The translations under genes were made by a program, and so were the position numbers. The notes below the pieces were generated by a model. It saw nothing but the letters and a program-made list of their open reading frames with translations. It made no database searches and was not told the DNA's origin. Shown here in pieces: positions 1,770-34,724 of a stretch of DNA of 35,871 nt; positions within the stretch are counted from its first letter, which is position 1; every line of letters begins with the position of its first letter. Source of the stretch: Callorhinchus milii (Eukaryota); NCBI RefSeq assembly GCF_018977255.1, contig NW_024705537.1, forward strand, positions 1-35,871, given 5' to 3'.

Positions 1770-1783
1770 ACCCCAGGTGGCCG
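1770..1783 (+). promoter_or_regulatory. Degenerate CTCF-like motif
   Basis: ACCCCAGGTGGCCG, a 1-bp-shorter variant of the CCACAAGGTGGCAG found at the homologous position in other units. Confidence 0.35.
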
Positions 1784-1990
1784 CACACCCCACACAGTAT
1801 GTGTATGCATACTTGAGAGAGACAGATAGCCATCAACTCGATATTAATGAAAGTAAATTGTAGGACTCAGAGTAATCATGTGTTGGCTTATGAGTTATTT
1901 AATTCTTTTTTTGGGAGGATGGGTTAGCCACATGTCTGATACATATGACAACTCATCACCATACCAGACTGAGAGTTCCATACATGTATG

Positions 1991-2117
1991 CCATGGTAGC
2001 AGTGAACATAGTCATTGCCCATCGATTTATCATGCATTGTACAGGTAATCACTGCTGTTCTTCTTCGATTATTGTTCATGGATCTGGGCTGTGACAAGGT
2101 AAAACCATCACAGCCAA
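1991..2117 (-). pseudogene. TRGV: TRGV-like family 3 fragment (FR1-CDR1 only)
   Basis: Acceptor, then GCDGFTLSQPRSMNNNRRRTAVITCTMHDKSMGNDYVHCYH (Trp41 to Cys). The leader exon and the 3' half of the V are missing. Confidence 0.8.
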
Positions 2118-3082
2118 CTGGAAACAGAAAATAAAATCATTTACTATCTCTGATAATGTGATGATCATTCAATTGCATCTAACCCTGTTTGTGCCAATAA
2201 GCAGTGTTTGCCGTTATGTTACCCCTCCCCCCACCACCTCAAGCTGGGCAGTACCTTTGCCAATTATTCATTTTCTAACATATTGGCTCATTTGGCAACA
2301 CTCAGGTTCCGCTTCAAAAGGTTGTGGTTTCAAGACCTGCAGCATTTGCACTTCTGTTAGGGAATAGGGTGTCAGCTATGGAGTCTGGCATTGATGGTCT
2401 CACAGAGCTTGTTTTGGCAAAGACTGTGCTATGACTGATCTATAATTTTTGGAGAGTAATAATGGTGAGTAGGGCCTTAGGGAAATCAGGTCTGGAGGGG
2501 ACAAAGTCGTGGAGGAGGGATTTGGCTGTATTGGGAGTGATGTGAGGACAGAGGCAGGTGATTAAGATAATGGTCTTCAGCAGAACTTGATTTTAAGACA
2601 CATTTCAACCTCTATTACAATAATATTGAATTCATGTTACAACTGATACGCCATGAGGCTGTGGTTATATTTTACAAATATAGCAGTATGCACAACAAAG
2701 AAAACATAGGTTTCACCATCTTCCATTTACCATCAGAGAGAACTGATATTTCAGATACTTAAAACGTGCATCTCTGGAGGAATGAGCAGGAGACTGTCAT
2801 CTGTAAATGCGACCTTCAGTAGATTTAATTTTGAACAACACATTTTACAGTCAATAGAATCCTTCAAAGCCAATGGCCAGGCACATACATTATGTTATTC
2901 ACTTCTGTAATACAATTACTGGACTGCACTTGAAAAACACTTTGACAAACAACAAGATTATATTTTTGAAGGGTCTTCAGATTTTACCAGGTTGTTTTCC
3001 CTCTGCTTCAGTTAACAATCTCCCCTTCAATACACTGAGACACAGCTGCAGCCGAAGTGATCTTCTAGAAAAAGGCAACTTT

Positions 3083-3408
3083 AATAATAATAATAATTCT
3101 TGCATTTCATAAAGCACTTTTCGCGTCTTCTAGATGGCTCAAACCGCTTCACAGAATATACTGTAAAGTGAATTGACTGTATACTTGTGGGCGAAACCCA
3201 ACAGACAAAGCAATGTCCAACATTGCACAAAGCAATGTCCCACAAACAGTCATGGATTGAAGTGACCAATTTATTTTTTCTTCTCTTGAGGGATTATTAT
3301 CAGACTTGTGGAGTAAGGAAACTTGCCGAAGGTTTTGCCCCACCAGGAATTGAGCCCAATTCCGTCGCTTGCGAGGTGAGTGCTCTAACCACTGAGCTCC
3401 AGGACTCC
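3083..3408 (-). mobile_element. tRNA-derived SINE (Deu-type body, L2-like tail)
   Basis: GGAGTCCTGGAGCTCAGTGG head, Deu-like TGTGGGACATTGCT..TGTGCAAT body and (ATT)n tail. Inserted at the RSS nonamer of the adjacent V. Confidence 0.85.
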
Positions 3409-3443
3409 ACTGTTTGTATGATTATGTGTCTAGGAGGGCTGTG

Positions 3444-4190
3444 TGAATGCCAGAGCCCACAGTAATAGGTGGCTGTGTCCTCCTGGACGGGTTTTATGAT
3501 TGTTAGAATGCACAACTGACCACTTTTAACAGCAGAGAAACGCTCTGAAAAGGCAGGTGAGGTTTCCCTCCAAGTTCCTGAGCGGTAACAGAGAATCCAT
3601 TGAAACTCCTTCCCGGGATTCCCACGGTAATAACAATAATAATAATCCTTGCATTTGATATAGCGCTTTTCACGTCGGGAGGACGTCCCAAAGCGCTTCA
3701 CAGAACACACTGTAAAGTGAATTGATTGTATATTTGTGGGAGAACGCGGCAGCCAATTGCGCACAGCAATGTCCCACAAACAGTCGTAGATTGAAAATGA
3801 CCAATTCATTATTGTTTTTTGGAGGGATTATTATTAGGCGTATGGAGTAAGGAAACTTGCCCAAGGTTTGGCCCTCTGCCTGGAATTGAACTCAGGTCTC
3901 TCGCTTGCAAAGCGAGTGCTCTATCCACTGAGCTACAGGACTCCACGTACCAGTGAACATGCACATTCTGCATTGATGCACCCGCCAGAGTGCAGGTCAT
4001 CTCTACTGTTCTGCCGGTTTTCTTGACCATGGATCCGGGCTGCGTTAAGGAAAGACCATCACAGCCCACTGGAAAGACAAAAACAATTCCTTATTTTATT
4101 TTACTCTCTGATAATGTGATAATCCTTTAATTGCATCCAGAAAAACGTACGTGTCAACAGGACACTCAGCACAGAGACACAACCCCACAT
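3444..4190 (-). pseudogene. TRGV: TRGV-like family 2, interrupted by a SINE in FR2
   Basis: Leader 4190-4151, V 4068-3945, SINE, then V 3629-3444 ending YYCGLWHS. Heptamer CACAGCC 3443-3437 with only a 19-bp spacer to nonamer 3417-3409. Confidence 0.88.
3630..3944 (-). mobile_element. tRNA(Ala)-like SINE
   Basis: Head GGAGTCCTGTAGCTCAGTGGATAGAGCACTCGCTTTGCAAGCGAGAGACCTGAGTTCAATTCC (A/B boxes), Deu-like core and (ATT)n tail. Approximate TSD ACG(G)TA. Confidence 0.88.
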
Positions 4191-4939
4191 ATCTGATGTG
4201 ATGTGTGGACCAGAGACAGTTTGAAGCGGATCGGATCACTTCACCTCACGCTTCTCGCTGTGGGAATGATCCAAACCTCTTTCTGCCAAATAGGGTTGTT
4301 GTGTGGTTGTGTTTCTCCCCTCCCCCACACCGATCTCTTCAGACCACACGATATCTGGGGCCATTTACTCTTTTGTTGCATCAGTTTTATATGGAGGGCA
4401 GTTATTGGGAGAAACTCCTCATCTGGTTCTAAATCGAGGATTTAGATTTTTTTTAAGTGAAAAAACGTTTCATGATTTTTCATCTCCCATCAAGCAGAAT
4501 TGACATGTTATAGTTTACAGTGCAACTCAGAAGGCGTGAGCAGGAGCCGAGCGTGAACTTTGTTGGGTTTAACTTTACAATTAGTAAGTTGCACCGAATG
4601 GAGATTTCAAAAAATTCGCCTTCAAACTGGAATTGTTAAGGTTTCCATGTGTAAGTGTTTGTTATTGATTTGCTGTGTTTACAAGTACAAAATATCTGAG
4701 TGACTAAAATAAAGTTCCTCTTTAACTCTTTCCCTCCTACTTAATACAATGAACACAACTCCCTCTTTATAGTTCTTCCCAGTTTCTGGACCACAACTAT
4801 CAGGATTGACCAGACTGTGATCTCTCTGCTGCAGTTTACAGTCTCCTCCTCAATACACTGAGACCCAACTGCAGCCGTGTTGGCTTCCGAGTGAAAGGGA
4901 AGTTTTTGTACGATCTCTTGTGTGTCTGCAGCTGCTGTG

Positions 4940-5368
4940 TGAATCCCAGACACCACAATAATAAATGCCACTGTCACCCGAGGTGAGGCTTTTGATTCTG
5001 AGAGTGCATGAGTCCACAGTTTTTTGAGCTGAATAACCGGGAAAATCAGGCGAGTTTTCTTTCTTATTTCCTGAGTGGTAATAGAGGATCCATTGCAGTC
5101 CCTTCCCGGGAGTTTCACGGTACCAGTGAACATAGTCATTGCCAATATTATTCTTTGTACAGGTAATCTTAACTGCCTTTCCTGATTTGACGATCATGGA
5201 TGAGGGCTGTGACAAGGTAAAGCCATCACAGCCAACTGGAAAGACAAAAACAATCATTAGTTTATTTTACTCTCTCTCTCTGACAATCTGATGGTTACTG
5301 AATGGCATTCAGATAAACTTACGCGACAGCAAGACGGTCAGTACACAGACACAGCCTGTCCTCAGCAT
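4940..5368 (-). CDS. TRGV: TRGV-like V segment, family 1, intact
   Basis: Leader 5368-5323, V exon 5235-4940, RSS CACAGCA-23-ACAAAAACT at 4939-4901. Confidence 0.9.
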
Positions 5369-5737
5369 GTTTGATACCATGTGTGGCCCAGGAACAGCTT
5401 CAAGCCAATTTGACCATCTCAGTTGGCTCGTCTTCCTGTGGGAAAGATCCAAACCCGTTTGCACCAATTAGAGCCGTTTTGTGGTTGTTTCCTCCTCCCC
5501 TCAGAGCGTAATACTCAAAGCTTTACTATTTCACATTCTGCTGCTCACTCCACATACACCTCAATATATCTCTTCTTCAGGCTTTACGTTTTTTTAATCT
5601 ATAATATAGGCTGTGCGTCAGCAATGGTTGAGGCATGACATTTTATATGGCAACACCCCACCCCCCACCAACGTGTAAAGGGAATAAGGTTGTGATGTTT
5701 AAAGTGTTACTTATATTAATTTACGGCTTCATACACG

Positions 5738-5751
5738 ACCCCAGGTGGCCG
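5738..5751 (+). promoter_or_regulatory. Degenerate CTCF-like motif
   Basis: ACCCCAGGTGGCCG, same as at 1770. Confidence 0.35.
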
Positions 5752-5954
5752 CCCACCCCACACAGTATGTGTATGCATACTTGAGACAGATAGCCATCAA
5801 CTCGATATTAATGAAAGTAAATTGTAGGACTCAGAGTAATCATGTGTTGGCTTATGAGTTATTTAATTCTTTTTTTGGGAGGATGGGTTAGCCACATGTC
5901 TGATACATATGACAACTCATCACCATACCAGACTGAGAGTTCCATACATGTATG

Positions 5955-7046: not shown

Positions 7047-7355
7047 AATAATAATAATTCTTGCATTTGGTAAAGCACTTTTCGCGTCTTCTAGATGGCT
7101 CAAACCGCTTCACAGAATATACTGTAAAGTGAATTGACTGTATACTTGTGGGCGAAACCCAACAGACAATTGCACAAAGCCATGTCCCACAAACAGTCAT
7201 GGATTGAAGTGACCAATTTATTTTTTCTTTTCTTGAGGGATTATTATCAGACTTGTGGAGTAAGGAAACTTGCCGAAGGTTTTGTCCCACCAGGAATCGA
7301 ACCCAATTCCGTCGCTTGAGAGGTGAGTGCTCTAACCACTGAGCTCCAGGACTCC
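7047..7355 (-). mobile_element. tRNA-derived SINE (duplicated copy of 3083-3408)
   Basis: Same insertion point in the nonamer and near-identical sequence. Confidence 0.85.
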
Positions 7356-7390
7356 ACTGTTTGTACGATTGTGTGTCTGGGAGGGCTGTG

Positions 7391-7817: not shown

Positions 7818-8513
7818 ATCTGATGTGATGTGTGGACCAGAGACAGTTTGAAGCGGATCGGATCACTTCACCTCACGCTTCTCGCTGTGGGAATGATCCA
7901 AACCTCTTTCTGCCAAATAGCGTTGTTGTGTGGTTGTGTTTCTCCCCTCCCCCACACCGATCTCTTCAGACCACACGATATCTGGGGCCATTTACTCTTT
8001 TGTTGCATCAGTTTTATATGGATGGCAGTTATTGGGAGAAATTCCTCATCTGGTTCTAAATCGAGGATTTAATTTTTTTTTAAGTGAAAAACCGTTTCAT
8101 GATTTTTCATCTCCCATGAAGCAGAATTGACATGTTATAGTTTACAGTGCAACTCAGAAGGCGTGAGCAGGAGCCGAGCGTGAACTTTGTTGGGTTTAAC
8201 CTTACAATTAGTAAGTTTCCATGTGTAAGTGTTTGTTATTGATTTGATGTGTTTAAAAGTAGAAAATATCTGAGTGAATAAAATAAGGTTCCCCTTTAAC
8301 TCTTTCCCTTCTGCTTAATGCAATGAACACAACGCCCTCTATATAGTTCTTCCCAGTTTCTGGACCACAACTATCAGGATTGACCAGACTGTGATCTCTC
8401 TGCTGCAGTTAACAATCTCCCCCTCAATACACTGAGACCCAACTGCAGCCGTGTTGACTTCCGAGTGAAAGGCAAGTTTTTGTGCGATCTCTTGTGCGTC
8501 TGCAGCTGCTGTG

Positions 8514-8956
8514 TGAATCCCAGACACCACAATAATAAATGCCACTGTCAATCGAGGTGAGGCTTTTGATTCTGAGAGTGCACGATTCCCCACTTTTTTG
8601 AGCAGAAAAACCAAGAAAATCAAGCGATTTATCTTTATTATCTTCTGAGTGGTAATAGAGGATCCATTGCAGTCCCTTCCCGGGAGTTTCACGGTACCAG
8701 TGAACATAGTCATTGCCTATATTATTCTTTGTGCAGCTAATCCTTGCTGCCTTTCCTGATTTGACGATCATGGATCTGGGCTGTGACAAGGTAAATCCAT
8801 CACAGCCAACTGGAAAGACAAAAACAATCATTAGGTTATTTTACTCTCTTTCTCTCTGACAATCTGGTGGTTACTGAATGGCATTCAGATAAACTTACAC
8901 GACAGCAAGACGGTCAGTACACAGACACAGCCTGTCCTCAGCGTGTTTGATACCAT
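8514..8956 (-). CDS. TRGV: TRGV-like V segment, family 1; usual ATG mutated to ACG, upstream in-frame ATG available
   Basis: V exon 8809-8514 open, RSS 8513-8475 CACAGCA-23-ACAAAAACT. Leader ACG at 8944-8942, in-frame ATG at 8956 (MVSNTLRTG). Confidence 0.8.
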
Positions 8957-10279
8957 GTGTGGCCCAGGAACAGCTTCAAGCCAATTTGACCATCTCAGTT
9001 GGCTCGTCTTCCTGTGGGAAAGATCCAAACCCGTTTGCACCAATTAGAGCAGTTTTGCGGTTGTTTCCTCCTCCCCTCAGAGCGTAATACTCGAACTTGT
9101 CTCATTCGACAGCAGTTTATTCCCACAGGATTTGAGCTCCTAATCTTGCTTTGCACAGGGGGAACGGAGCATAATCAGAGGTACTGTCTTTGTGGTGAGA
9201 TGTTCAACCGAGGTCCCTTTGCCTCATTCAGGTGGACACTAGAAATATTATGACACTATCAATACAAAAGATTTTCTCTCTGCCCTGGACAAACTTCCTC
9301 TTTGTGTTCATGAACTTGCTGGTGCAAATGGGTTTGCATTTGCCTACAAAGCAAGCCACTACCCAATGAACAACAATTACATATGAAGGCAATAAATACG
9401 TAGCAACATGATATGGAAGTTATACCCTGACCAGTCCTGCAGTAGATTGACAATAATTCATACCAAAAGCTATTGATAGAAACATATTTATTCGACAGAG
9501 GATTTGGCATTGATATAATTTTCAGATCTCAGTTTGCGAAACCTCACAGACACTTGGGGACACCAACCATACTGACCTACTGTCAGAGTGAAATTCCATG
9601 AGACATTAGTCAAATATGTTAATACAGCAAATGTGTTACCTCTTTCAAACGCCCCCTCCTGCCCTCTACAACTGATACAATTCAAGCTTGGGGGGGTCAC
9701 GTAATCATCAATTCTCACATTATCTTACTCTCTCCTCGTGCCATAAATCTCATCCTATATGAACTTGTCTCAATAAAAATGGAAACTATATGAGGGATCC
9801 AGAAAATGATTGTTACAGATTGTTAATTTGTGATTATTTTTTGCAAATTCTGTTCAACAGAACATCTTTGATGGTGTAATTCTTGTTTTAATCAGCTTTT
9901 CTATGAATTGTTTTACACCCATTCCCCCTGCTTATTTTTCTTTGGAGCACTTGGAACTTGTTGACTGGTTTAAAATGTGTGTCTTTGTGGTCAGTTCCCC
10001 CTCTGCTCGAAATCTGCCTCCGTTAAGCAGAGCTGCAACAGGAAAGTCGAAAGTCTTTCATAAACTTGCACCAAGCAAAAGATTTAAAAGCATATTTACT
10101 TATAATTTTTTATACTTTGAACTTTTACTAGACAACAAATCCACAGAAAATACGAGGAAATACATAGTGACTTGGCCAGTCTTGATCTGTGGCATAAGTT
10201 ATAGAATCACAGAATGTTACAGCATAGAAACACACCAATTAGCTCACTAAGGCTGCACTGGTGTTTTGCTCTGTATTAA

Positions 10280-10911
10280 CAACAACAACAACAACAAGGT
10301 TCCATTTGTATGGCGCCTTTCACGTCGGGAGAACTTCCCAAGGCGCTGGACAGTGTACAGCTTTTCAGACCCGAGCTGAGATGGGGGGGGGGAAGGGAGA
10401 GGAAGGTAAGGGGCGTGACCAATGGCATGGTCGAAGATGAGGGTCTTGAGGTGTGACTTGAAGGAGGCTAAGGAGGGGGCGAGGCGGAGTGATTGGGGAT
10501 GGAGTTCCAGAAGTTGGGAACAGAGTGCCTGAAGGCTCTCCCGCCAATGGTGGGACGGGTGGGTCGGGGAACGTGGAGCAGGCCGGAGCCGGCTGAGTTG
10601 GTAGGGGATAAGGAGGTCGCAGAGGTAGGGTAGGGCGAAGCTATGGAGGCCTTTGTAGTGAGGACCAGGATCTTGAACTGGATCCTCTGAAGGATAGGGA
10701 GCCAATGGAGTCGGATGTGAATGGGGGAGATGGGGTCATGGAATTTGGTGCAGGAGAGGACACCAGCTGCAGAGTTCTGGATTATCTGCAGTCTGTGGAG
10801 GGAGGCGTTGGGAAGGACGACAAGCAGGGCATTTGCTTAGTCGAGCGTGGAGGTGATGAAGGCATGAACAAGAGTTTCAGCGGCCTGAGGGGTGAAGTAA
10901 TGGCGGAGTCG
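10280..10911 (-). mobile_element. 5'-truncated L2-clade LINE fragment
   Basis: Frameshifted ORF2 C-terminus (..LRLAPSLASFKSHLKTLIFDHA..), (GTT)n tail, TSD ATTAA at 10275-10279 and 10912-10916. The empty site is visible in paralogous units (~20630, ~26700, ~30815). Confidence 0.88.
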
Positions 10912-11119
10912 ATTAAGGCGCGTAATCTAATCGCACTCTCCTGCTCACTCCACATACACCTCTATATTTCTCTTTTTCCAGGCTGGTCTTTTTCTTAAAT
11001 ATAATATGGGATCTGCTTCATCTTATTATTATCTTACATGCCAACCACCCTCTGTGTAAAGGGAATAATGTTGTGATGTTTAAAGCGCTCCTTGTGTTAC
11101 GTTATGTCTGCATACGTGA

Positions 11120-11133
11120 CCACAAGGTGGCAG
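11120..11133 (+). promoter_or_regulatory. CTCF-like motif
   Basis: CCACAAGGTGGCAG, an exact match to CCACNAGGTGGCAG. Confidence 0.65.
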
Positions 11134-12089
11134 CACACCCAACACAGAAAGTGGATTGTGCCTCTTCAGACTAGATAGCCACCATCTTTATATTAGTCAA
11201 ACAAAATTAAATTGTAGGCCTCAGAGTAGTCATATGTTAGCATATGAGTTGTTTTGTAGAGTTGATCTGCTGAGAAGCGGTGAAATCTGTGCTATGGGGT
11301 AATAGTCATAATTCAAAACTTCAGAATCAACATTCAACACTGGCACATCAGATATCAGACTTCAGTGAATGGGAGATGGATTCCATGGAGCAATTTGGTG
11401 AATGTACTTTTTGCGGATTTAACCACATGTCTGATACATTTGTAAACTCATTACCATAAAAGACTGAGACTTCCACGTATGTATGTCTTTTACACATGGA
11501 AAATTCTCTACGGAATGGAATACACCTCTCCCTAGAGGGATACACCCAATTTCCTAATTCCAGAGGATAATGGGCAAGGATTAGTGAGCTAAAGGTTGGA
11601 GATCCCTGAGTATCCGTTGAGACATTGCTGCAATTTAACCAGCTAAGACGACATAACATGCTATTGATAGCACTGCCCAGCAAGCTTGCCCAACGAGGAC
11701 CACTATACTAGTCAGGGCTTTGGCTTGCAGAGCAAATAGGAACTGAGTGACAAGTGTTCTTTTTCCTAGGAAACTAGTCCACCTCTGCAACTTGTGCCAA
11801 AGAGTTAGCTGGCTGGCCTGTCAGCGGCAGGGCCCTGTATTACTGTGATCTCTCTGGCTAAGAATACTAAGGACTTCTTCAGCTGGAACTCCATTTTGAT
11901 CTGATGGTATCCCTCTCCCAAAGGGCAAAAAGATCCCAAGAAAAAGAAAAAACACTCCTCTAGTTGGTATTTCAGTTGTTGTATAAACACAGAAGCTGTA
12001 TCCTAGGACTGGAGCACAACACATTTGTTATTCAAAAAGGGAGTGAGTAATGTGCTTATTATGTTACATATTCAATATTTAATTATCAG

Positions 12090-12325: not shown

Positions 12326-12748
12326 TGTTGGGACTTCATCTTAAAATTAATACTTGCAGCCAATTGAAATACTAGCATGTTGTTTCAAAGCTGCAATTAT
12401 CATATTTGGGAAACAATTACGTTTTTCATCTTTGTAATTGATTTTGTTCGTTTACAAGCCCACTATGCGATTATTGTTGTGCAATCTACCATAGGTGTAA
12501 AATTTCAGAGTGACTAAAATAAGGTTTCTCTACAATGCTTTCCATCCTGTTAATACAATGAACACAACGCTCTTTTTACAGTTCTTCCCAGTTTCTGGAC
12601 CACAACTATCAGGATTGACCAGACTGTGATCTCTCTGCTGCAGTTAACAATCTCCTCCTCAATACACTGAGAACCAACTGCAGCCGTGTTGGCTTCCGAG
12701 TGAAAGGGAAGTTTTTGTACGATCTCTTGTGTGTCTGCAGCTGCTGTG

Positions 12749-13179
12749 TGAATCCCAGACACCACAATAATAAATGCCACTGTCATCCGAGGTGAGGCTT
12801 TTGATTCTGAGAGTGCACGAGTCCCCACTTTTATGAGCAGAAAAACGCGGAAAATCAGGCGAGTTTTCTTTCTTATTTCCTGAGTGGTAATAGAGGATCC
12901 ATTGCAGTCCCTTCCCGGGAGTTTCACGGTACCAGTGAACATAGTCATTTTCCATATCACTCTTTGTACAGCTAATCATCGCTGCCTTTCCTGATTTCGC
13001 GATAATGGATCTGGGCTGTGACAAGGTAAAGCCATCACAGCCAACTGGAAAGAGAAAAACAATCATTAGGTTATTTTACTCTCTCTCTCTCTGACAATCT
13101 GATGGTTACTGAATGGCATCCAGATAAACTTACGCGACAGCAAGACGGTCAGTACACAGACACAGCCTGTCCTCGGCAT
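12749..13179 (-). CDS. TRGV: TRGV-like V segment, family 1, intact
   Basis: Leader 13179-13134 (MPRTG..), V exon 13044-12749, RSS 12748-12710. Confidence 0.9.
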
Positions 13180-14482
13180 GTTTGATACCATGTGTGGCCC
13201 AGGAACAGCTTCAAGCCAATTTGACCATCTCAGTTGGCTCGTCTTCCTGTGGGAAAGATCCAAACCCGTTTGCACCAATTAGAGCAGTTTTGTGGTTGTT
13301 TCCTCCTCCCCTCAGCGCGTAATACTCGAAGCTTTACTTGTCTATTTGCCATATATTCTCATAACTTGGCTCAATTGAAAGCAATTTATTCCTATAGAAT
13401 TTGATCTCCTTATCTTGCTTTACACTGGGGGAACGCAGCACAGTCAGAAGTACTGTCTTTGGGGTGAGATGTTCTACCGAGTTCCCTTGCTTCAATCAGA
13501 TGGACACTAGAAATATTATGACACTAACAAAAAAGTTTTTCTCTCTGCCCTGGCCAAACTTCCCCATTAGGTACTGCTGTTTTCGGGAACTTGCTGGTGC
13601 AAATGGGTTTGAGTTTGCCTACAAAGGCAGCCACTGCACACTGACCAACGGTTACTCCTGAAGGGATTAGATACACAGCAACATGATATGGAAGTTATAC
13701 CCTGACCAGTCCAGCAGCAGCTTGGTATGACAATAATTCATACCAAGAGCTATTGATAGAAACATTTTGAATCGAAAGAGGCTTTGGGGTTCATATAATG
13801 TTCATTGATATCACTTTGCGAAACCTCACACACACTTGGGGACACCAACCATATTGACCTACTGTCAGAGTGAAATTCCATTAGACATTAGTCAAATATG
13901 TTAATACAGCAAATGTTTTACCTCTTTCAAACGCCCCCTCCTGCCCTCTACAACTGATACAATTCAAGCTTGAAGGGTCACGTAATCATCAATTCTTACA
14001 TTATCTTACTCTCTCCTATTCCTTTCAACCTTACTAGTGCCGTAAATCTCATCCTATGTGAACGTGTCTCAATAAAAATGGAACGATACAAGTGACCCAG
14101 AAAATGATTGTTACAGATTGTTAATTCGTGATTATTTGTTGCAAATTCTGTTCAACAGAACATCTTTGCTGTTGTAATTCCTGTTTTAATCAACTTTACT
14201 ATGAATTGTTTTACACCCATTCCCTCTGCTTATTTTTCTTTGGAGCTCTTGGAACTTGTTGACTGGTTTAAAAATGTGTGTCTTTGTGGTCAGTTCGCCA
14301 CCTGCTCGAAATCTGCCTCCGTTAAGCAGAGCTGCGACAGGAAGTTGGAAAGGCTTTTATAAACCAGCACCAAGCAAAAGATTTTAAGGCATATTTACTT
14401 ACAATTTTTTTATATTTGGACCTTTTACTAGAAAACAGATTCACAGAAAATACCTTGTGTTGCTTTACGTCTATATACACGA

Positions 14483-14496
14483 CCACAAGGTGGCAG
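14483..14496 (+). promoter_or_regulatory. CTCF-like motif
   Basis: CCACAAGGTGGCAG. Confidence 0.65.
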
Positions 14497-16574: not shown

Positions 16575-16608
<34 letters not shown>

Positions 16609-17059: not shown

Positions 17060-17073
17060 GCACAAGGTGGCAG
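17060..17073 (+). promoter_or_regulatory. CTCF-like motif
   Basis: GCACAAGGTGGCAG (1 mismatch). Confidence 0.55.
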
Positions 17074-20844: not shown

Positions 20845-20858
20845 CCACAAGGTGGCAG
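20845..20858 (+). promoter_or_regulatory. CTCF-like motif
   Basis: CCACAAGGTGGCAG. Confidence 0.65.
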
Positions 20859-21794
20859 CACACCCAACACAGTTGGTGTATAGTGCCTCTTCAGACCAGA
20901 TAGCCACCATTTCTATATCAGTGAAATGAAAGTAAATTGTAGGACTCAGAGTAGTCATATGGTGGCCTATGAGTTATTTTGTATTGTTGATCTGCTGAGG
21001 AGCATTGAAATCTGTGCCATGGGGTGATAGTCATGATTCAAGGCTTCAAAATCAACATTCAATATTGCCACATCAGAGACCAGGCCTCAGTGAATGGGAG
21101 ATGGATTCCATGCAAGAATTTGGTGAATGTACTTTGTGGGGGAGGCGGGTGTGGGGCAGTATCAGACACATGTCTGATAATTGTAAACAATCATCACCAT
21201 ACCAGACTGAGATTTCTGTGTATGTATGTCTCTTACACATGGAAACCTCTCTTTGGAATGGAGTACACACTCTCTCCTTGGAGGGATACACCCTACTTCC
21301 TAATTCCAGAGAGTATTGCCTCAGTTTAGCGAGCCAAAGCTTGGCAATCCTGAGTATCTGTTGACTCATTGCTGCAGTTTAACCAGCTAAAACCACATAA
21401 CTTGCCGTTTAAAGCAAAACCCCGCAAGCGTGCCCAACGAAGATCACCCTACCAGTCAGGCCTTTGGCTTACAGAGTAAATAGGAGCTGAGTGGGAAGTG
21501 TCTTTGTTCCCATTGAACTGTCGTTCGGTCATAGGCAGGGCACTGGAACTCTGTGATCCTCCCGGCTAAGAAAACTTGGGTCTTCTTCAGCCAAAACTCC
21601 CTTTTGATCTGGTGATATCCCTCCATCAATGGGCACAAAGATTCTCACAAAGAAAAACTCTCCTCTGGTTGGTATTTCAGAAGTAGCGTACACAAAACCT
21701 GTATCCACGGACTGGAGTACAACGCATTTGATACTCAAAAAGGAAGTGAGGTGTATGCTTGATACATGTTTAAAATTCAATATCTAACGATCAT

Positions 21795-23872: not shown

Positions 23873-24186
23873 AATAAGAATAATAATCCTTGCATTTGAT
23901 AAAGTGCTTTTCATGTCTATTAGTCGTCTCATGTCTATTAGTGCTTCACGGAATATACTGTAAAGTGAATTGACTATACATTTCTGGGTGAAATGCAGCA
24001 GCCAATTGCACACAGCATTGTCCCACAAACAGTCATGGATTGAAGTTACCAATTATTTATTTTCTTGAGGGATTACCATCAGGCATGTGGAGTAAGGAAA
24101 CTTGCCCAGGGGTCCGCCCCGCTAGAACCAAACCCAATTCTCTCGCTTGTGAGGCGAGTGCTCTAACCTTTGAGCTACAGGACTCC
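23873..24186 (-). mobile_element. tRNA-derived SINE at RSS nonamer (same insertion site as 3083 and 7047)
   Basis: GGAGTCCTGTAGCTCAAAGG head, AAT tail, TSD ACTTT. Confidence 0.85.
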
Positions 24187-24457: not shown

Positions 24458-24871
24458 CTCAGAAGGCGTAAGCAGGAGCCAAGCGTGAACTTTGTTGGGT
24501 TTAACCATACAATTAGTAAGTTGCACCGAATGGAGATTTCAAAAATTTCGCCTTCAAACTGGAATTGTTAAGGTTTCCATGTGTAAGTGTTCATCATTGA
24601 TTTGATGTGTTTACAAGCACAAAATGTCTGAGTGAATAAAATAAGGTTCCCCTTTAACTCTTTCTCTCCAGCTTAACACAATGAACACAACGCCCTCTTT
24701 ATAGTTCTTCCCAGTTTCTGGACCACAACTACCAGGATTGACCAGACTGTGATCTCTCTGCTGTAGTTAACAATCTCCCCCTCAATACAGTGAGACCCAA
24801 CTGCAGCCGTGTTGGCTTCCGAGTGAACCACAAGTTTTTGTACGATCTCTTGTGTGTCTGCAGCTGCTGTG

Positions 24872-25302
24872 TGAATCCCAGACACCACAATAATAAATGC
24901 CACTGTCATCCGAGGTGAGGCTTTTGATTCTGAGAGTGCACGAGTCCACAGTTTTTTGAGCAGAAAAACCGATTAAATCAGGCGATTTTTCTTTCTTATT
25001 TTCTGAGTGGTAATAGAGGATCCATTGCAGTCCCTTCCCGGGAGTTTCACGGTACCAGTGAACATAGTCATTGCCAATATTATTCTTTGTACAGGTAATC
25101 CTCGCTACTGATCCTGATTTCGCAATAATGGATCTGGGCTGTGACAAGGTAAAGCCATCACAGCCAACTGGAAAGACAAAAACAATCATTAGGTTATTTT
25201 ACTCTCTTTCTCTCTGACAATCTGATGGTTACTGAATGGCATTCAGATAAACTTACGCGACAGCAAGACGGTCAGTACACAGACACAGCCTGTCCTCAGC
25301 AT
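24872..25302 (-). CDS. TRGV: TRGV-like V segment, family 1, intact
   Basis: Leader 25302-25257, V exon 25167-24872, RSS 24871-24833. Confidence 0.9.
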
Positions 25303-26917
25303 GTTTGATACCATGTGTGGCCCAGGAACAGCTTCAAGCCAATTTGACCATCTCAGTTGGCTCGTCTTCCTGTGGGAAAGATCCAAACCCGTTTGCACCA
25401 ATTAGAGCAGTTTTGCGGTTGTTTCCTCTTCCCCTCAGAGCGTAATACTTGAAGCTTTACTTTGTCTCTTTGCCATTTATTCATTATTCTAATAACTTGG
25501 CTCATTTGATAGCAGTTTATTCACATAGGATTTGAGCTCCTAATCTTGCTTTACACTGGGGGAACGGAACATAATCAGAGGTACTCTCGTTGGGGTAAGA
25601 TGTTCAACCGAGTTCCCTTGCCTCATTCAAATGGACACTACAAATATTAAAACACTATCAATAAAAAATATTCTCTCTGCCCTGGTCAAACTTGTTCTTT
25701 AGTTACTGCTGTGTCCGGGAACTTGCTGCTGCTTATGGGTTTGAGTTTGCCTACAAAGGCAGCCACTACACACTGACCAACAGTTACTTATGAAGGGATT
25801 AGATACATAGCAACATGATATGGAAGTTATACCCTGACCAGTCGAGCAGCAGATTGACAACAAATCATACCAAGAGCTATTGGTAGAAACATATTTATTT
25901 GACAGAGGATTTGGGATTGATATAATTTTTGTTGATATCAGTTTGGGAAACCTCACACACACACTTGGGGACACCAACCAAACTGACCTACTGTCAGAGT
26001 GAAATTCCATTAGACATTAGTCACAAATGTTAATACAGCGAATGTTTTACCTCTTTCAAACGCCCCCTCCTGCCCTCTGCAACTGATACAATTCAAGCTT
26101 GGGGGGGGGTCACATAATCATCAATTCTTACATTATCTTACTCTCTCCTATTCCTTTCAATCTTAGTAATATCGTAGATCTCATCTTATATGAACGTGTG
26201 TCAATAAAAATGGAAACTATATGAGGGACCCAGAAAATTATTGTTACAGATTGTTAATTCGTGATTATTTGTTGCAAATTCTGTTCTGTCTTTGATGTTG
26301 TAATTCTTGTTTTAATCAGCTTTTCTATGAATTGCTTTATATCCATTCCCTCTACTTATTTTTCTTTGCAGAACTGAGAACTTGTTGACTGGTTTAAATA
26401 TGTGTGTCTTTATAGTCAGTTCGCCCTCTGCTCGAAATCTGCCTCCGTTAAGCAGAGCTGCGACAGGAAAGTGGAAAGGCTTTCATAGACTTGCACCAAG
26501 CAAAAGATTTAAAGGCATATTTACTTTTAATTTTTTATACTTGGACCTTTCACAAGGAAATAGATTAAAGAAAATACCAGGAAGTGCATAGTGACTTGGC
26601 CAGTCTTGATCTGTGGCATAAGTTATAGAATCACAGAATGTGACAGCATAGAAACACACTAATTAGCTCACTAAGGCTGCACTGGTGTTTTGCTCTATAT
26701 TAAGGCATTCAACTCTAATCGCACTCTCCTGCTCACTGCACATATACCTCAATATTTCTCTTTTTCCAGGCTTGACTTTTCCTAAAATATAATGTGGGAT
26801 GTGCTTCAGCTATGGTTTATGGCAGATCACGTTATATGCCAACCACCCTCTGTGTAAAGGGAATAATGTTGTGATGTTCAAAGCTTTATTTGTGTTACTT
26901 TACGTCTATATACGCGA

Positions 26918-26931
26918 CCACAAGGTGGCAG
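26918..26931 (+). promoter_or_regulatory. CTCF-like motif
   Basis: CCACAAGGTGGCAG. Confidence 0.65.
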
Positions 26932-27436
26932 CACACCCAACACAGTAAGCGGATTGTGCCTCTTCAGACCAGATATCCACCGTCTCTATATTAATGAAAT
27001 TAAGGTAAATTGCAGGCTTCAGAGTAGTCATGTGTTAGTTTATGAGTTATTTTGTAGAGTTAATCTGCTGATGGGCGGTGAAGTGTGTGCTATGTGGTGA
27101 TAGTCATGATTCAAGGCTTCAGAATCAACATTCAACACTGGCACATCAGATATCAGGTTTTAGTGAATGGGAGATGGATTCCATGTAACACATTTGTGAA
27201 TGTACATTTTGCGGGTTCAGCCGCATATCTGATACATGTGAAAACGCATCCCCATACCAGACTGAGACTTCCATATATGTATGTCTTTTACACATGGAAA
27301 ATTCTCTACGGAATGGAATACACATTCTCTCCCTGGAGGGACCCATCCTATTTCCTAATTCCAGAGTTTAATGGGCAAAGATTAGTGAGCCAAAGCTTGG
27401 AGATCCTGTAGGATCCTGGAGATCCTATAGGACTGC

Positions 27437-27746
27437 GGAGTCCTGTAGCTCAGTGGTTAAACTACTCACCTTGCAAGCGAGACACCTGGGTTCAATTCCA
27501 GACAGGGGGAAACCTTGGGCACGTTTCCTTACTCCACACGCCCAATGATAATCCCTCCAAAACAAAAACAATAATAAATTGGTCATTTTCAATCAACAAC
27601 TGGTTGTGGGACACTGCTGTGCGCAATTGGCTGCCGTGTTTCGCCCACAAGTATACGGTCAATTCACTTTACAGTATATTCTGTGAAGCACTTTGAGATG
27701 TCTAGAAGATGTGAAAAGCACTATATCAAATGCAAGGATTATTATT
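27437..27746 (+). mobile_element. tRNA-derived SINE, full length
   Basis: A box TAGCTCAGTGG, B box GGTTCAATTCC, Deu-like TGTGGGACACTGCTGTGCGCAATTGGCTGCC, (ATT)n tail, TSD AGATCC. Confidence 0.9.
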
Positions 27747-28235
27747 AGATCCCTGAGTATCTGTTGAATCATTGCTGCAGTTTAACCAGCTAAAACTGCA
27801 TAACTTGCTATTGAAAGCACTGCCCAGCAAGCTTGCACAATGAGGACCACTATACTAGTCAGGGATTTGGCTTGCAGAGTAAATAAGAGCTGAGTGGCAA
27901 GTGTCCTTTTTCCTAGGAAACCAGTCCTCCTCTTCAAGTTGTGCCAAAGAGTTAGCTGGCTGGCCTGTCAGAGGCAGGGCCCTGTACGACTGCAATCTCT
28001 CTGGCTAAGAATACTAGGAACTTCTTCAGCTGAAACTCCATTTTGATCTGATGGTATCCCTCCCCCAAATGGCAAAAAGATTCTAAGAAAAAGAAAAAAC
28101 TCCTCTGTTTGGTATTTCAATTGTTGCATAAACATAGAAGCTGTATCCTAGGACTGGAGGACAACACATTTGTTATTAAAAAAGTGAGTGATGTATGTGC
28201 TTGTTATATGTTACACATTCAATATTAAATTATCA

Positions 28236-28500: not shown

Positions 28501-28926
28501 TTTGTTGGGATTTAATCTTAAAATTCATACATGCAGCCAATTGAAATACAAACGTATTGTTTCAAAGCTGGATTTAACCTATTTGGGAAACAATTACGTT
28601 CTTCATCTTTCTAAATTGATTTTGTTCGTTTCCAAACCCACCATGTGATTATTGTTGTGCAATCTACCATAGGTGCAAAGTTTTAGAGTGATTAAAATAA
28701 GATTTCTCTATAACTCTTTCCATCCTGTTAATACAAGGAACCCAAAACACTCTTTATAGTTTTTCCCAGTTTCTGGACCACAACTATCAGGATTGACCAG
28801 ACTGTGATCTCTCTGTTGCAGTTAACAATTTCCCCCTCAATACATTGAGACACAACTGCAGCTGTGTTGGCTTCCGAGTGAAAGGCAAGTTTTTGTACGA
28901 TCTCTTGTGTGTCTGCAGCTGCTGTG

Positions 28927-29357
28927 TGAATCCCAGACACCACAATAATAAATACCACTGTCATCCGAGGTGAGTCTTATGATTCTGAGAGTGCACGAGT
29001 CCCCACTTTTATGAGCAGAAATACGCGGAAAATCAGGCGAGTTATCTTTCTTATCTTCTGAGTGGTAATAGAGGATCCATTGAAGCCCCTTCCCGGGAGT
29101 TTCACGGTACCAGTGAACGTAGTCATTTTCCATATCACTCTTTCTACAGGTAATCATCGCTGCCTTTCCTGATTTGACAATCATGGATCTGGGCTGTGAC
29201 AAGGTGAAGCCATCACAGCCAACTGGAAAGATAAAAACAATCATTAGGTTATTTTACTCTCTCTCTCTCTGACAATCTGATGGTTACTGAATTGCATTCA
29301 GACAAACTTACGCGACAGCAAGATGGTCAGTACACAGACACAGCCTGTCCTCAGCAT
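28927..29357 (-). CDS. TRGV: TRGV-like V segment, family 1, intact
   Basis: Leader 29357-29312, V exon 29222-28927, RSS 28926-28888. Confidence 0.9.
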
Positions 29358-31028
29358 GTTTGATACAATGTGTGGCCTAGGAACAGCTTCAAGCCAATTT
29401 GACCATCTCAGTTGACTCGTCTTCCTGTGGGAAAGATCCAAACCCGTTTGCACCAATTAGAGCAGATTTGCGGTTGTTTCCTCCTCCCCTCAGAGTGTAA
29501 TACTCAAAGCTTTACGTTGCCTCTTTGCCATTTATTCATTATTCTAATAATTTGGATCATTTGTTAGCAACTTATTCCCATAGGATTTGACCTCCTAATC
29601 TTGCTTTACACTAGGGGGGGGAGAGTGGGTCGGAGCACTACACACATATATTCTCATAACTTGGCTCAATTGAAAGCAATTTATTCCTATAGGATTTGAT
29701 CACCTTATCTTGCTTTACACTGGGGGAACGCAGCACAGTCAGAGGTACTGTCTTTGGGGTGAGCTGTTCTACCGAGTTCCCTTGCTTCATTCAGATGGAC
29801 ACTAGAAATATTATGACACTATCAAAAAAGTTTTTCTCTCTGCCCTGGCCAAACTTCCCCATTAGGTACTGCTGAGGTACTGCTGTTTTCGGGAACTTGC
29901 TGGTGCAAATGGGTTTGAGTTTGCCTACAAAGGCAGCCACTACACACTGAAGTTATACCCTGACCAGTCCAGCAGCAGATTGACAATAATTCATACCAAG
30001 AGCTATTGATAGAAACATTTTGATTCTACAGAGGTGTTGATATAATTTTCGTTGATATCAGTTTGCGAAACATCACACACATTTGGGGACACCAACCATA
30101 TTGACCTACTGTCAGAGTGAAATTCCATTAGACATTAGTTAAATATTTTAATTCAGCAAATGTTTTACCTCTTTCAAACGCCCCCTCCTGCCCTCTACAA
30201 CTGATACAATTCCAGCTTGAAGGGTCACGTAATCATCAATTCTTACATTATCTTACTCTCTCCTATTCCTTTCAACCTTACTAGTGCCGTAAATCTCATC
30301 CTATGTGAACGTGTCTCAATAAAAATGGAAACGATACGAGTGACCCAGAAAATGATTGTTACAGATTGTTAATTCGTGATTATTTGTTGCAAATTCTGTT
30401 CAACAGAACGTCTTTGATGTCGTGTTTTAATCAGCTTTTCTATGAATTGTTTTAGACCCATTCCCTCTACTTATTTTTCTTTGGAGCACTTGGAACTTGT
30501 TGACTGGTTTAAAAATGTGTGTCTTTGTGGTCAGTTCACCCCCTGCTCGAAATCTGCCTCCGTTAAGCAGAGCTGCGACAGAAGGTGGACATCTTTCATA
30601 GACTAGCACCAAGCAAAAAATTTAAAGGCATATTTACTTATAATTTTTTATACTTGGACCTTTTACTAGAAAATAGATAAACAGAAAATAGGAGGAAATG
30701 CATAGTGACTTGGCCAGTCTTGATCTGTGGCATAAGTTATAGAATCACAGAATGTGACAGCATAGAAACACACCAATTAGCTCACTAAGGCTGCACTGGT
30801 GTTTTGCTCTATATTAAGGCACTTATTCTAATCGCACTCTCCTGCTCACTGCACATACTCCTCAATATTTCTCTTTTTCCAGTCTTTACTTTTTTAAGCA
30901 TTATATGGGATGTGCTTCAACTATGGTTTATGGCAGATGATTTTACGTGCCAACCATGCTCTGTGTAAAGGGAGTAAAGTTGTGATGTTTAAAGAGTTAC
31001 TTGTGTTACTTTACGTCTGGATACACGA

Positions 31029-31042
31029 CCACAAGGTGGCAG
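31029..31042 (+). promoter_or_regulatory. CTCF-like motif
   Basis: CCACAAGGTGGCAG. Confidence 0.65.
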
Positions 31043-31644
31043 CAAACCCATCACAGAAAGTGGATAGAGCCTCTTCAGACCAGATATCCACCATCTCTAT
31101 ATCAGTGAAATTAAAGTAAATTGTAGGAGAGTAGTCATGTGTTGTTTATGAGTTATTTTGTCGGTTTGATCCCAAGGCACTATTCAAAAAGTGAATGGGG
31201 TTAATCCCGGTGTCCTGCCTTCGTAGGGATTTAATCTTATAATTAATACATGCAGCCAATTGAAATTCAATCGTGTTGTTTCAAAGCTGGAATTATCCTA
31301 TTTGGGAAACGATTACGTTTTTCATGTTTTTAACTGAATTTTATTTATTTACACGCCCACCATGTGATTATTGTTGCGCAATCTACCATAGGTGTAAAAT
31401 GTCTGAGTGACCAAAATAAGGTTCCTCTGTAACTCTTTCCATCCTGTTAATATAATGAACACAACGCCCTCTAAATAGTTTTTCCTAGTTTCTGGTCCAC
31501 AACTATCAGGATTGACCAGACTGTGATCTCTCTGCTGCAGTTAACAATCTCCTCCTCAATACACTGAGACCCAACTGCAGCCGTGTTGGCTTCTGAGTAA
31601 AGGCAAGTTTTTGTGCGATCTCTTGTGAGTCTGCAGCTGCTGTG

Positions 31645-32076: not shown

Positions 32077-32862
32077 ATCTGATGTGAAAAGCTTGAAGGG
32101 GATCTGACCATCTCACTGCGTTCCTCTTGAGTGAGAATGGTCTAAACCTATTTGTGCCAATAAGCAGTGTTTGCGGTTATGTTACCCCTCCCCCCACGAC
32201 TTCTTCAAACTGAGCATCACCTATTGCCAATTATTCATTTTATTAACATATTGGCTCATTTGGCAGCACTGCAGGTTCTGGTACAGAAGGTTGTGGGTTC
32301 AAGAACCACAGCATTTGTACTTCTGTTAGACAACAGGATATCATCCATGGAGTCTGGCATTGATGGTCTCACAGAGCTTGCTTTGGTACAACTGATAATC
32401 CATGAGGCCATGGTTATATTTTTACAAATATAGCAGCATTCACAACACAGAAAGCTGTTAGTGAAAACACATGTTTCACCATCTTCGATTTACCATCAGA
32501 GAGAACTAATATGTCACGATACTTAAAATTTGATTCTCCAGAAAAATGAGCAAGAAACTGATCTGTAAGTGCGATCTTTAGTGGATTTCATTTTGAGCAA
32601 ACATGTTACAGTCAATGGAATCCATAGAAGCCAATGGCAATGCAAATATATTGTCGTATTCACTTATATAATAGACACAGGACTTCACAGTAAAAACCCT
32701 TTGAGAAACGTTTTGAGATGTGATATTTGGGCGATATCATCAGATTGTTTTCTCTGCTGCAGTTAACAATCTGCCCTTCAATACACAGTCCCAGCTGCAG
32801 CCGAGGTGATCTTGTGAAAGGCAACTTTTTGTACGATGCCTTGTGTGTCTGGGAGGGCGGTG

Positions 32863-33162
32863 TGAATGCCAGAGCCCACAGTAATAGGTGGCTGTGTCCT
32901 CCTGGACGGGTTTTATGATTGTTAGAATGCACAACTGACCACTTTTAACAGCAGAGAAACGCTCTGAAAAGGCAGGTGAGGTTTCCGTCTGACTTTCTGA
33001 GCGGTAATAGAGAATCCACTGAAACTCCTTCCCGGGATTCCCACGGTACCAGTGAACATACACATTCTGCATTGATGCATTGATAATGTGATAATCCTTT
33101 AATTGCATACAGAAAAACTTACGTGTCACCAGGACACTCAGCACAGAGACACAACCCCACAT
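32863..33162 (-). pseudogene. TRGV: TRGV-like family 2 with ~130-bp deletion of acceptor and FR1
   Basis: Leader ATG 33162. The intron remnant is fused to CDR1 near 33080, so Cys23 is lost. RSS CACCGCC-23-ACAAAAAGT at 32862-32824. Confidence 0.82.
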
Positions 33163-33912
33163 ATCTGATGTGATGTGTGGACCAGAGACAGTTTGAAGCG
33201 GATCGGATCACTTCACCTCACGTTTCTCGCTGTGGGAATGATCCAAACCTCTTTCTGCCTAATAGGGTTGTTGTGTGGTTGTGTTTCTCCCCTCCCCCAC
33301 ACCGATCTCTTCAGACCACACGATATCTGGGGCCATTTACTCTCTTGTTGGATCAGTTTTATATGGAGGGCAGTTATTGGGAGAAATTCCTCATCTGGTT
33401 CTAAATCGAGGATTCAGATTTTTTTTTAAGTGAAAAAACGTTTCATGATTTTTCATCTCCCATCAAGCAGAATTGACATGTTATAGTTTACAGTGCAACT
33501 CAGAAGGCGTAAGCAGGAGCCGAGCGTGAACTTTGTTGGGTTTAACCATACAATTAGTAAGTTGCACCGAATGGAGATTTCAAAAAATTCGCCTTCAAAC
33601 TGGAATTGTTAAGGTTTCCACGTGTAAGTGTTTGTTATTGATTTGCTGTATTTACAAGTACAAAATATCTGAGTGACTAAAATAAAGTTCCTCTTTAACT
33701 CTTTCCCTCCTACTTAATACAATGAACACAACGCCCTCTTTATAGTTCTTCCCAGTTTCTGGACCACAACTATCAGGATTGACCAGACTGTGATCTCTCT
33801 GCTGCAGTTAACAGTCTCCTCCTCAATACACTGAGAACCAACTGCAGCCGTGTTGGCTTCCGAGTGAAAGGGACGTTTTTGTACGATCTCTTGTGTGTCT
33901 GCAGCTGCTGTG

Positions 33913-34341
33913 TGAATCCCAGACACCACAATAATAAATGCCACTGTCACCCGAGGTGAGGCTTTTGATTCTGAGAGTGCACGAGTCCACAATTTTTTGA
34001 GCAGAAAAACTGGGAAAATCAGGCGAGTTTTCTTTCTTATTTCCTGAGTGGTAATAGAGGATCCATTGCAGCCCCTTCCCGGGATTTTCACGGTACCAGT
34101 GAACATAGTCATTGTCAATATTATTCTTTGTACAGGTAATCCTCGCTACTGATCCTGATTTCGCGATAATGGATCTGGGCTGTGACAAGGTAAAGCCATC
34201 ACAGCCAACTGGAAAGACAAAAACAATCATTAGGTTATTTTACTCTCTCTCTCTGACAATCTGATGGTTACTGAATGGCATTCAGATAAACTTACGCGAC
34301 AGCAAGACGGTCAGTACACAGACACAGCCTGTCCTCAGCAT
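33913..34341 (-). CDS. TRGV: TRGV-like V segment, family 1, intact
   Basis: Leader 34341-34296, V exon 34208-33913, RSS CACAGCA-23-ACAAAAACG at 33912-33874. Confidence 0.9.
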
Positions 34342-34710
34342 GTTTGATACCATGTGTGGCCCAGGAACAGCTTCAAGCCAATTTGACCATCTCAGTTGGC
34401 TCGTCTTCCTGTGGGAAAGATCCAAACCCGTTTGCACCAATTAGAGCCGTTTTGTGGTTGTTTCCTCCTCCCCTCAGAGCGTAATACTCAAATCTTTACT
34501 ATTTCACATTCTGCTGCTCACTCCACATACACCTCAATATATCTCTTCTTCAGGCTTTACATTTTTTTAATCTATAATATAGGCTGTGCGTCAGCAATGG
34601 TTGAGGCATGATATTTTATATGGCAACACCCCACCCCCCACCACCGTGTAAAGGGAATAAGATTGTGATGTTTAAAGCGTTACTTATATTAATTTACGGC
34701 TTCATACACG

Positions 34711-34724
34711 ACCCCAGGTGGCCG
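34711..34724 (+). promoter_or_regulatory. Degenerate CTCF-like motif
   Basis: ACCCCAGGTGGCCG, same as at 1770 and 5738. Confidence 0.35.

Follow-up and report, generated by a model that had tools for sequence, protein, structure and literature searches.

A CTCF-like site probably propagated by tandem duplication of V units in a putative TCR-gamma-type array of a chimaera

Strong matches to the CTCF core motif lie upstream of V genes of one family in the window (the whole stretch of 35,871 nucleotides of Callorhinchus milii DNA that was analysed). They are homologous copies, placed antisense to the V genes, and the motif has decayed in part of the family. We think it probable, on the basis of the sequence, that a single ancestral CTCF-like site was spread by duplication of the V unit, that its intact copies are likely to be bound by CTCF, and that the number and strand of the copies record the history of that duplication.

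The window contains 15 V segments, all on the minus strand, and each has a 23-spacer RSS with heptamer CACAGCA, a 23-nt spacer and the nonamer ACAAAAAC(G/T). Nine are family-1 V genes, made up of a leader, an intron of ~90 bp, the V exon and the 23-RSS. These have a match to the V-set domain (Pfam), and their closest proteins are Ig-like domain proteins of Callorhinchus milii, with 72% identity. The motif at the end of the V region (YYC-G-V-W-D) is presumably gamma- or lambda-like. A PDB sequence search returned mostly scFv chains and an Atlas search gave generic V-set clusters, so that neither discriminated gamma from other chains. The array is V-only, and has the V-set domain, leader intron and 23-RSS of a TCR-gamma V segment. 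The immunoglobulin genes of cartilaginous fish have a cluster, non-translocon organisation, and their TCR loci are described as ordinary translocons (PMC6795676). Partly on account of that cluster organisation of the immunoglobulin genes, we tentatively regard the array as putative TCR-gamma-type V genes of the chimaera. It is compact, with 15 V segments in 36 kb.

Table 1. Motif copies and V-unit features, with positions in the window. Scores are in bits, using an approximate CTCF matrix; distances from the leader ATG are in bp.
Feature	Position	Strand	Score	Block	Leader ATG (distance)	Remarks
Exact CTCF-consensus 14-mer	11120..11133	plus	22.5	~10926-11265	8956 (2164)	
Exact 14-mer	14483..14496	plus	22.3		13191 (1292)	left side of block lost to 311-bp deletion ending at 14455
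One-mismatch copy	17060..17073	plus	17.1	16865-17189	16711 (349)	G in place of first C of CCAC; short unit
Exact 14-mer	20845..20858	plus		~20650-20990	19256 (1589)	
Exact 14-mer	26918..26931	plus		26719-27052	25314 (1604)	reference unit
Exact 14-mer	31029..31042	plus		~30833-31161	29369 (1660)	1.43-kb deletion after block
Decayed homologue	1770..1783	plus		1563-1900	1414 (356)	1-bp deletion and substitutions, 3 mismatches; short unit
Decayed homologue	5738..5751	plus		5531-5864	5380 (358)	short unit
Decayed homologue	34711..34724	plus		34504-34837	34353 (358)	short unit
Family-1 V gene	931..1414	minus				V-set domain, leader and intron, 23-RSS
Eight further family-1 V copies	4901-5380, 8475-8956, 12710-13191, 16208-16711, 18775-19256, 24833-25314, 28888-29369, 33874-34353	minus				
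Promoter-proximal region, reference unit	25315..25461	minus				longest invariant runs of unit; CCAAT-like and ETS-like CAGGAAG motifs
1.26-kb segment separating promoter from motif block	25462..26718	unstranded				long and short units differ by its presence

The sequence CCACAAGGTGGCAG is found exactly five times on the plus strand, where none is expected in shuffled sequence, and a further plus-strand copy at 17060 carries one mismatch to it (Table 1). All six are where the initial annotation had placed them. These copies are stringent matches to the CTCF core motif, five being identical to CCACNAGGTGGCAG and the sixth differing by a single mismatch. Their spacing is regular, at 2.6-6.1 kb. 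With the approximate scoring matrix, scores are 22.3-22.5 bits for the five exact copies and 17.1 bits for the 17060 copy; on the same matrix a 22.3-bit match has p = 1.8e-8 per position, i.e. ~1.2e-4 per 3.5-kb unit, and a match of 22 bits would occur by chance ~36 times in 1 Gb. The ancestral match is thus far better than chance, so that CTCF binding is plausible, and the intact predicted sites most likely bind CTCF. The CTCF consensus is 5'-CCACNAGGTGGCAG-3', and forward-reverse pairs are convergent (PMC5291250), in agreement with the original identification of the motif and with the statement that loops form between convergent sites. CTCF-dependent convergent looping has been reported in a cartilaginous fish and in lamprey, and the antigen-receptor loci of the mouse are dense in CTCF sites (PMC6439775).

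Nine sites had been proposed for the nine intact V genes. The copies at 1770, 5738 and 34711 are ACCCCAGGTGGCCG. Each has three mismatches to CCACNAGGTGGCAG, and at that stringency chance alone gives an expectation of 7.4 matches per window. With the approximate matrix their scores are 8.2 bits (plus strand) and 10.0 bits (minus strand), which is background. The higher minus-strand score raised the possibility that these are reverse-oriented CTCF sites, yet both values are at background and no orientation was assigned. The number of credible sites is six, for nine family-1 V genes or 15 V segments overall. Open reading frames persist in the three V genes whose sites have decayed; a V gene can thus stay intact without the site.

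All nine positions are homologous and fall in one block of ~330 bp, which is found in the window only 5' of the family-1 V genes. The six strong copies are paralogues of a single site and did not arise independently. The nine positions lie 349-2164 bp upstream of the nearest family-1 leader ATG, matching the 0.36-2.2 kb noted at the outset. The promoter-proximal region has 94-98% identity between units. The 1.26-kb segment that follows it is present in the five long units (those with the sites at 11120, 14483, 20845, 26918 and 31029) and missing from the four short units. At the DNA level an insertion of 646 bp (10280-10925) has no second copy in the window. The initial annotation had the sites surviving both large indels and LINE insertions; large differences are indeed seen between units, and the LINEs are putative, no reverse-transcriptase domain having been found by Pfam in the open reading frames of the intervening DNA. 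In a tree of the block the three decayed copies, which are 98-99% alike, group with the 17060 copy. The branch of that grouping is ~0.2 substitutions per site, with ~3 events in the 19-mer, roughly the neutral expectation.

This structure suggests a simple history. A single, very good match to the CTCF core would have lain a few hundred bases 5' of a family-1 V gene promoter (TCR-gamma type), and head-to-tail tandem duplication of the entire V unit would then have copied it. Five copies would have remained exact, and one would have changed once, at an important C. In the short-unit lineage the motif would have lost the phase of its 5' half-site, and the decayed version would subsequently have been duplicated three times. 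Where a V unit containing one site is duplicated head-to-tail, one site per unit and a single strand follow automatically. The one-per-unit count and uniform strand, offered earlier as architecture, are by-products of tandem duplication; they reflect duplication history and not a designed locus-wide polarity.

An 18-nt invariant run is common to the five exact copies, and is equalled in 1.8% of distal windows (about 2-4% as a summary range) and in 5.6% of all windows. A uniform-rate simulation gave P = 0.003-0.03 for five copies staying identical, a post hoc value because the copies were chosen for identity. When all nine copies are taken the motif lies at the 58th percentile of windows and the 15th within the block, and its rate of change is about that of its surroundings. 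AGGTGGC alone is invariant in all nine, and does not extend beyond several other runs of 7-11 nt in the block. Evidence for selection on the motif is marginal at best. The initial annotation had named, as fatal to its reading, a motif that formed part of an interspersed repeat with no excess conservation. Within the window the block is confined to the 5' side of family-1 V genes, so the first part does not apply there; excess conservation is the marginal one described above.

The lack of excess conservation across the nine copies is what would be expected if the motif were a neutral passenger, lying in methylated or closed chromatin and never bound by CTCF in vivo, or if it were a site for another factor. 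Changes in the motif fall on positions of high information, which is in keeping with this. The RUNX consensus GACCACA shares bases with the 5' part of the motif, so that another factor could be involved. Against this, chance would yield a 22-bit match only ~1e-4 times per unit, and the RUNX 7-mer by itself has much lower specificity. We therefore consider this explanation unlikely, though it deserves to be taken seriously.

The six strong sites are all on the plus strand and the V genes are on the minus strand, so that the motif is antisense to V, and co-orientation along the array holds for 6/6. The earlier description of every site as antisense to V stands for these six and lapses for the three decayed copies. 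With the V genes on the minus strand, a plus-strand motif in forward orientation points toward higher coordinates and away from the side on which the RSSs lie. V-associated sites of mouse Igh and Tcrb face the D-J-C end (PMC6439775, PMC10772921), and the direction had been correctly reasoned to be the opposite of theirs. No J segment (FGXG plus heptamer, sought on both strands) and no C segment is present in the window, and the best minus-strand match, at 11.4 bits, is background; there is thus no convergent partner within the 35.9-kb window. It had been argued that either J-C lies to the right, with joining by inversion, or the locus uses loops of opposite polarity. That choice is not forced, because two simpler options were omitted: the sites may have no role in V-J looping, or their orientation may be of little importance. 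In the mouse Tcra/d and Igk V regions bound CTCF sites are found in both orientations, and inversion of the VH81X site led to a modest drop in the use of VH81X (PMC6439775). Copy number and shared direction say little on the folding of the locus.

If the sites were functional V-associated CTCF elements facing a recombination centre, J-C would lie at higher coordinates with the opposite transcription, and the V genes would join by inversion. The direction of the six strong copies agrees with this, as does the precedent of the mouse Igh and Tcrb V-region sites. But co-orientation is accounted for by duplication alone, the window is without a J or C segment, TCR loci of cartilaginous fish are described as ordinary translocons (PMC6795676), and the prior for a whole inverted V array is low. 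We regard joining by inversion as improbable.

A selected architecture of opposite polarity seems slightly less credible still. Here the sites upstream of V would pair with a reverse site or boundary 5' of the array, or insulate each V promoter from the neighbour upstream of it, and would shape V usage. The sites are strong, co-oriented and regularly spaced, five copies show marginal local conservation, and in mouse Tcrb loops are formed between V sites of the same orientation (PMC10772921). However, there is no strong minus-strand partner in the 36 kb, the motif has decayed in 4/9 units while V reading frames have been kept, and in so compact an array long-range contraction may be unnecessary. 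That the motif was brought by a transposable element, like the CTCF sites borne by B2 SINEs in rodents, is very improbable: tRNA-derived SINE copies and other interspersed repeats are present in the window, but the SINE copies are located elsewhere and do not overlap the block, which has no tRNA-like head nearby and, within the window, has matches at the nine positions upstream of family-1 V genes only.

We return to the spread of one ancestral site by duplication of V units. An intact site would probably be a directional barrier of the ordinary kind, at which cohesin coming from higher coordinates (the side upstream of V) would stall, and when bound might serve as a local loop anchor or insulator 5' of the V promoter. 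As far as the sequence goes, nothing indicates a role in V-J joining. As it stands, the observation is what tandem duplication of V genes would ordinarily produce.

A literature search found no published description of V-associated CTCF sites in a cartilaginous fish. If CTCF binds, then V-associated CTCF elements, known from the antigen-receptor loci of mouse and human, would extend to a TCR V array of a chimaera. If joining by inversion were true, the arrangement of mammalian Igh and Tcrb, with CTCF sites directed at the recombination centre, would already have been present in the earliest-branching jawed vertebrates. Reversed polarity, if true, would bear on the way in which V(D)J recombination came to be coupled to loop extrusion; the data analysed speak neither for nor against it.

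The closest comparison is with the promoter-associated CTCF-binding elements of mouse Tcrb (e.g. the Trbv1 site; PMC10772921), which likewise lie near or 5' of the V promoter and recur along the array in one orientation. The mouse sites have proven binding of CTCF and cohesin and face D-J-C in the V sense, whereas those of the chimaera are predicted, are antisense to V, and are strong at only 6/15 V segments. The V_H-associated elements of mouse Igh (PMC6439775) are similar in being strong co-oriented motifs tied to V units, with a quality that varies among copies. However, the proximal Igh sites, placed immediately 3' of the RSS, converge with IGCR1 and with the 3' sites, while the chimaera sites are 0.35-2.2 kb 5' of the leader and face the reverse way relative to V. 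The PAIR elements of the distal mouse V_H region are intergenic repeats with sites for CTCF, E2A and Pax5. They resemble the chimaera block in that a non-coding segment with a CTCF motif has been propagated with one V family by duplication, and differ in that Pax5-dependent antisense transcription and the binding of factors are what define them.

All 15 V segments in the window lie on the minus strand, ending in YYC-G-(V/L)-W-(D/H)-S-H followed by a heptamer CACAGCA, a 23-nt spacer and a nonamer of the ACAAAAAC type. Nine belong to family 1, whose genes comprise a leader exon, a V exon that is open and, between them, an intron of ~90 bp (GTAAGT donor, CAG acceptor). Their nearest database proteins are unnamed Callorhinchus milii Ig-like domain proteins (72% identity). 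Database searches with the V segments gave no separation of gamma from other chains, and no J segments are present in the 35.9-kb window. In cartilaginous fish the TCR loci are translocons and the Ig genes are clustered (PMC6795676), and the V-only array fits the former layout better than the latter. Two minus-strand leaders have altered start codons; in the V at 28888-29369 the first ATG is ATT and a second in-frame ATG is retained, while in that at 8475-8956 the second is ACG and the first is retained. In the V at 16208-16711 (minus strand), an expanded (GA)n microsatellite (16574-16610) occupies part of the leader intron.

Upstream of the family-1 genes there are five exact copies of the 14-mer CCACAAGGTGGCAG, where zero are expected in shuffled sequence, and one copy with a single mismatch, as the initial annotation had described. 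The 14-mer is identical to the published CTCF consensus 5'-CCACNAGGTGGCAG-3' (PMC5291250), so the earlier identification holds, and all copies are on the plus strand. These six and three degenerate copies have the same position within a ~330-bp block that lies upstream of all nine family-1 genes and occurs nowhere else in the window. The distance to the leader ATG is 349-2164 bp, in agreement with the earlier 0.36-2.2 kb. The differences in spacing arise from a 1.26-kb segment that is present in five long units (those with the exact copies) and missing from four short ones, a 646-bp insertion in one unit, a 311-bp deletion in the unit of site 14483 that ends at 14455, 28 bp left of the motif, and a 1.43-kb deletion in the unit of site 31029 that starts at 31161, ~120 bp right of the motif. 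Both deletions spare the motif, but they are anecdotal and are not tests of constraint. The sites were said to survive large indels and LINE insertions; the indels are seen, and the LINE insertions are putative, as no reverse-transcriptase domain was found in ORFs of the intervening DNA. The unit-specific insertions at 10280-10925 and 17835-18130 have ORFs sharing the peptide motif LRLAPSL..F.S.LK..LFD in opposite orientations, with no DNA similarity between them; one terminates in a (CAA)n run, and the two probably represent old interspersed-repeat copies.

CTCF-like motifs and SINE copies in the window (bit scores are approximate, from JASPAR MA0139.1 counts)
Feature	Position	Strand	Score (bits)
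Exact copies, long units	11120, 14483, 20845, 26918, 31029	plus	22.3-22.5
One-mismatch copy, short unit	17060	plus	17.1
Degenerate copies, short units	1770, 5738, 34711	plus	8.2
Degenerate copies, opposite strand		minus	10.0
Weak CTCF-like 19-mer (V-sense)	9647-9665, 13929-13947, 26058-26076, 30176-30194	minus	10.2
tRNA-derived SINE	3088-3408	minus	
tRNA-derived SINE	3637-3944	minus	
tRNA-derived SINE	7049-7355	minus	
tRNA-derived SINE	23879-24186	minus	
tRNA-derived SINE	27437-27747	plus	

Scoring with MA0139, as had been proposed, sets the exact and one-mismatch copies apart from the degenerate ones. The matrix counts are approximate, and p values were taken from the exact score distribution of that matrix. 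A score of 22.3 bits has p = 1.8e-8 per position (~1.2e-4 per 3.5-kb unit, or ~36 chance matches per gigabase). The degenerate copies, in which a 1-bp deletion shifts the 5' half-site and an A-to-C change affects the 3' part, are at background; 2-5 matches of 8-10 bits are expected per window by chance, as are 7.4 with their three mismatches to the IUPAC consensus. Of the proposed nine sites for nine V genes there are thus nine homologous positions but six credible sites. On the minus strand no partner above 11.4 bits (approximate matrix) is present in the 35.9-kb window. The weak minus-strand 19-mer, conserved in four long units and lying ~0.86 kb closer to V than the strong site, would make a divergent pair with it; 2.4 such chance matches are expected per window.

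Self-comparison shows that the V unit is repeated head-to-tail, and duplication of a unit carrying one motif explains one motif per unit on a single strand with no need for selection. In a tree of the block the degenerate copies (98-99% alike) and the 17060 copy form one clade, of short units, so that there are ~7 lineages: five keep the exact motif, one has a weakened form and one a decayed form. The copies are homologous, the match is strong, the motif is antisense to V and decay is partial. We propose that one ancestral high-affinity CTCF-type site lay upstream of a V promoter and was propagated by duplication. An intact site would probably bind CTCF, block cohesin coming from the V-upstream side and serve as a local anchor or insulator. 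This would add a new case to a class of element already known, predicted here from sequence.

Across all nine copies the aligned sequences show no excess conservation of the motif over its surroundings. The 14-mer has three parsimony changes and one indel; among windows drawn from the columns common to all nine it ranks at the 58th percentile, and within the block alone at the 15th. AGGTGGC is the sole stretch of the motif invariant in all nine, and is equalled by other invariant runs of 7-11 nt in the block, e.g. GTGTAAAGGGA and TTGTGATGTT. The decayed-clade branch (~0.2 substitutions per site; ~3 events in 19 nt) is at roughly the neutral expectation. The five exact copies give a mildly positive signal. 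All share GACCACAAGGTGGCAGCA, an invariant stretch of 18 nt that ranks seventh in length across 1403 shared columns; of the six that exceed it, four fall in the promoter and leader. Of all 18-column windows in these units 5.6% are invariant, or 1.8% without the proximal 300 columns. Uniform-rate simulation on the block tree gave P = 0.003 that five 14-mers stay identical, and P = 0.03 with the slower whole-unit rate. Because these copies were chosen for identity, and rates vary clearly along the unit, constraint in the long-unit lineage is suggestive, not demonstrated. Identity between units is 94-98% in the promoter-proximal 270 bp versus 76-89% in the motif block. The longest invariant runs (36 and 50 nt, five units) directly precede the leader ATG, at 25326-25412 on the minus strand and at homologous positions. 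They include CCAAT-like (ATTGG) and ETS-like (CAGGAAG) motifs and probably form the core of the V promoter.

The motif might instead be a passenger that CTCF does not bind, or might serve a different factor, for example RUNX; we consider this unlikely. The first bases of the strong motif, on its 5' side (11118-11124 and homologous positions), also read as the RUNX consensus GACCACA, which is missing from the 17060 and degenerate copies.

Forward-reverse consensus pairs are the convergent, loop-forming configuration (PMC5291250), the CTCF N-terminus being exposed to oncoming cohesin (bioRxiv 10.64898/2026.10.19.759930). The plus-strand motif thus faces higher coordinates, as first reported; for V genes on the minus strand this is the upstream direction, away from the RSSs. 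Relative to V this is opposite to mouse Igh (PMC6439775) and Tcrb (PMC10772921), where the V-region sites do face the D-J-C end as had been stated. An inversional layout, with the sites facing the recombination centre, seems to us very unlikely, as does selected reverse polarity or insulation. The initial annotation's choice between J-C to the right and reversed polarity is not compelled, since it presumes functional sites and decisive orientation, and since the window has no J-C to set direction against. In mouse, Tcra/d and Igk V regions have bound sites in both orientations and inversion of the VH81X site lowered usage modestly (PMC6439775), and loops between same-orientation V sites also form in Tcrb (PMC10772921). 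The window contains no N and may, speculatively, form a short scaffold of its own, in which case its strand relative to J-C would be arbitrary. Long-range contraction may not limit an array this compact, which packs 15 V segments into 36 kb.

That a transposon brought in the site is highly improbable, as the SINE copies (~310 bp, three of five with an Rfam tRNA match) lie away from the motif block. The SINE adjoins the RSS nonamer of three V segments of family 2, a second V family (YYC at 3467, 7414 and 24249), and one copy splits the V exon of the V at 3467 after HWY. No SINE is present at the V at 32886, also of family 2.

Convergent CTCF looping is reported for little skate and lamprey (bioRxiv 10.64898/2026.10.19.759930), and a convergence rule is therefore reasonable for the chimaera. 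CTCF-type sites are enriched in mammalian antigen-receptor arrays (PMC6439775), and the strong ancestral match argues that they are truly enriched in such V arrays, as in mammals.
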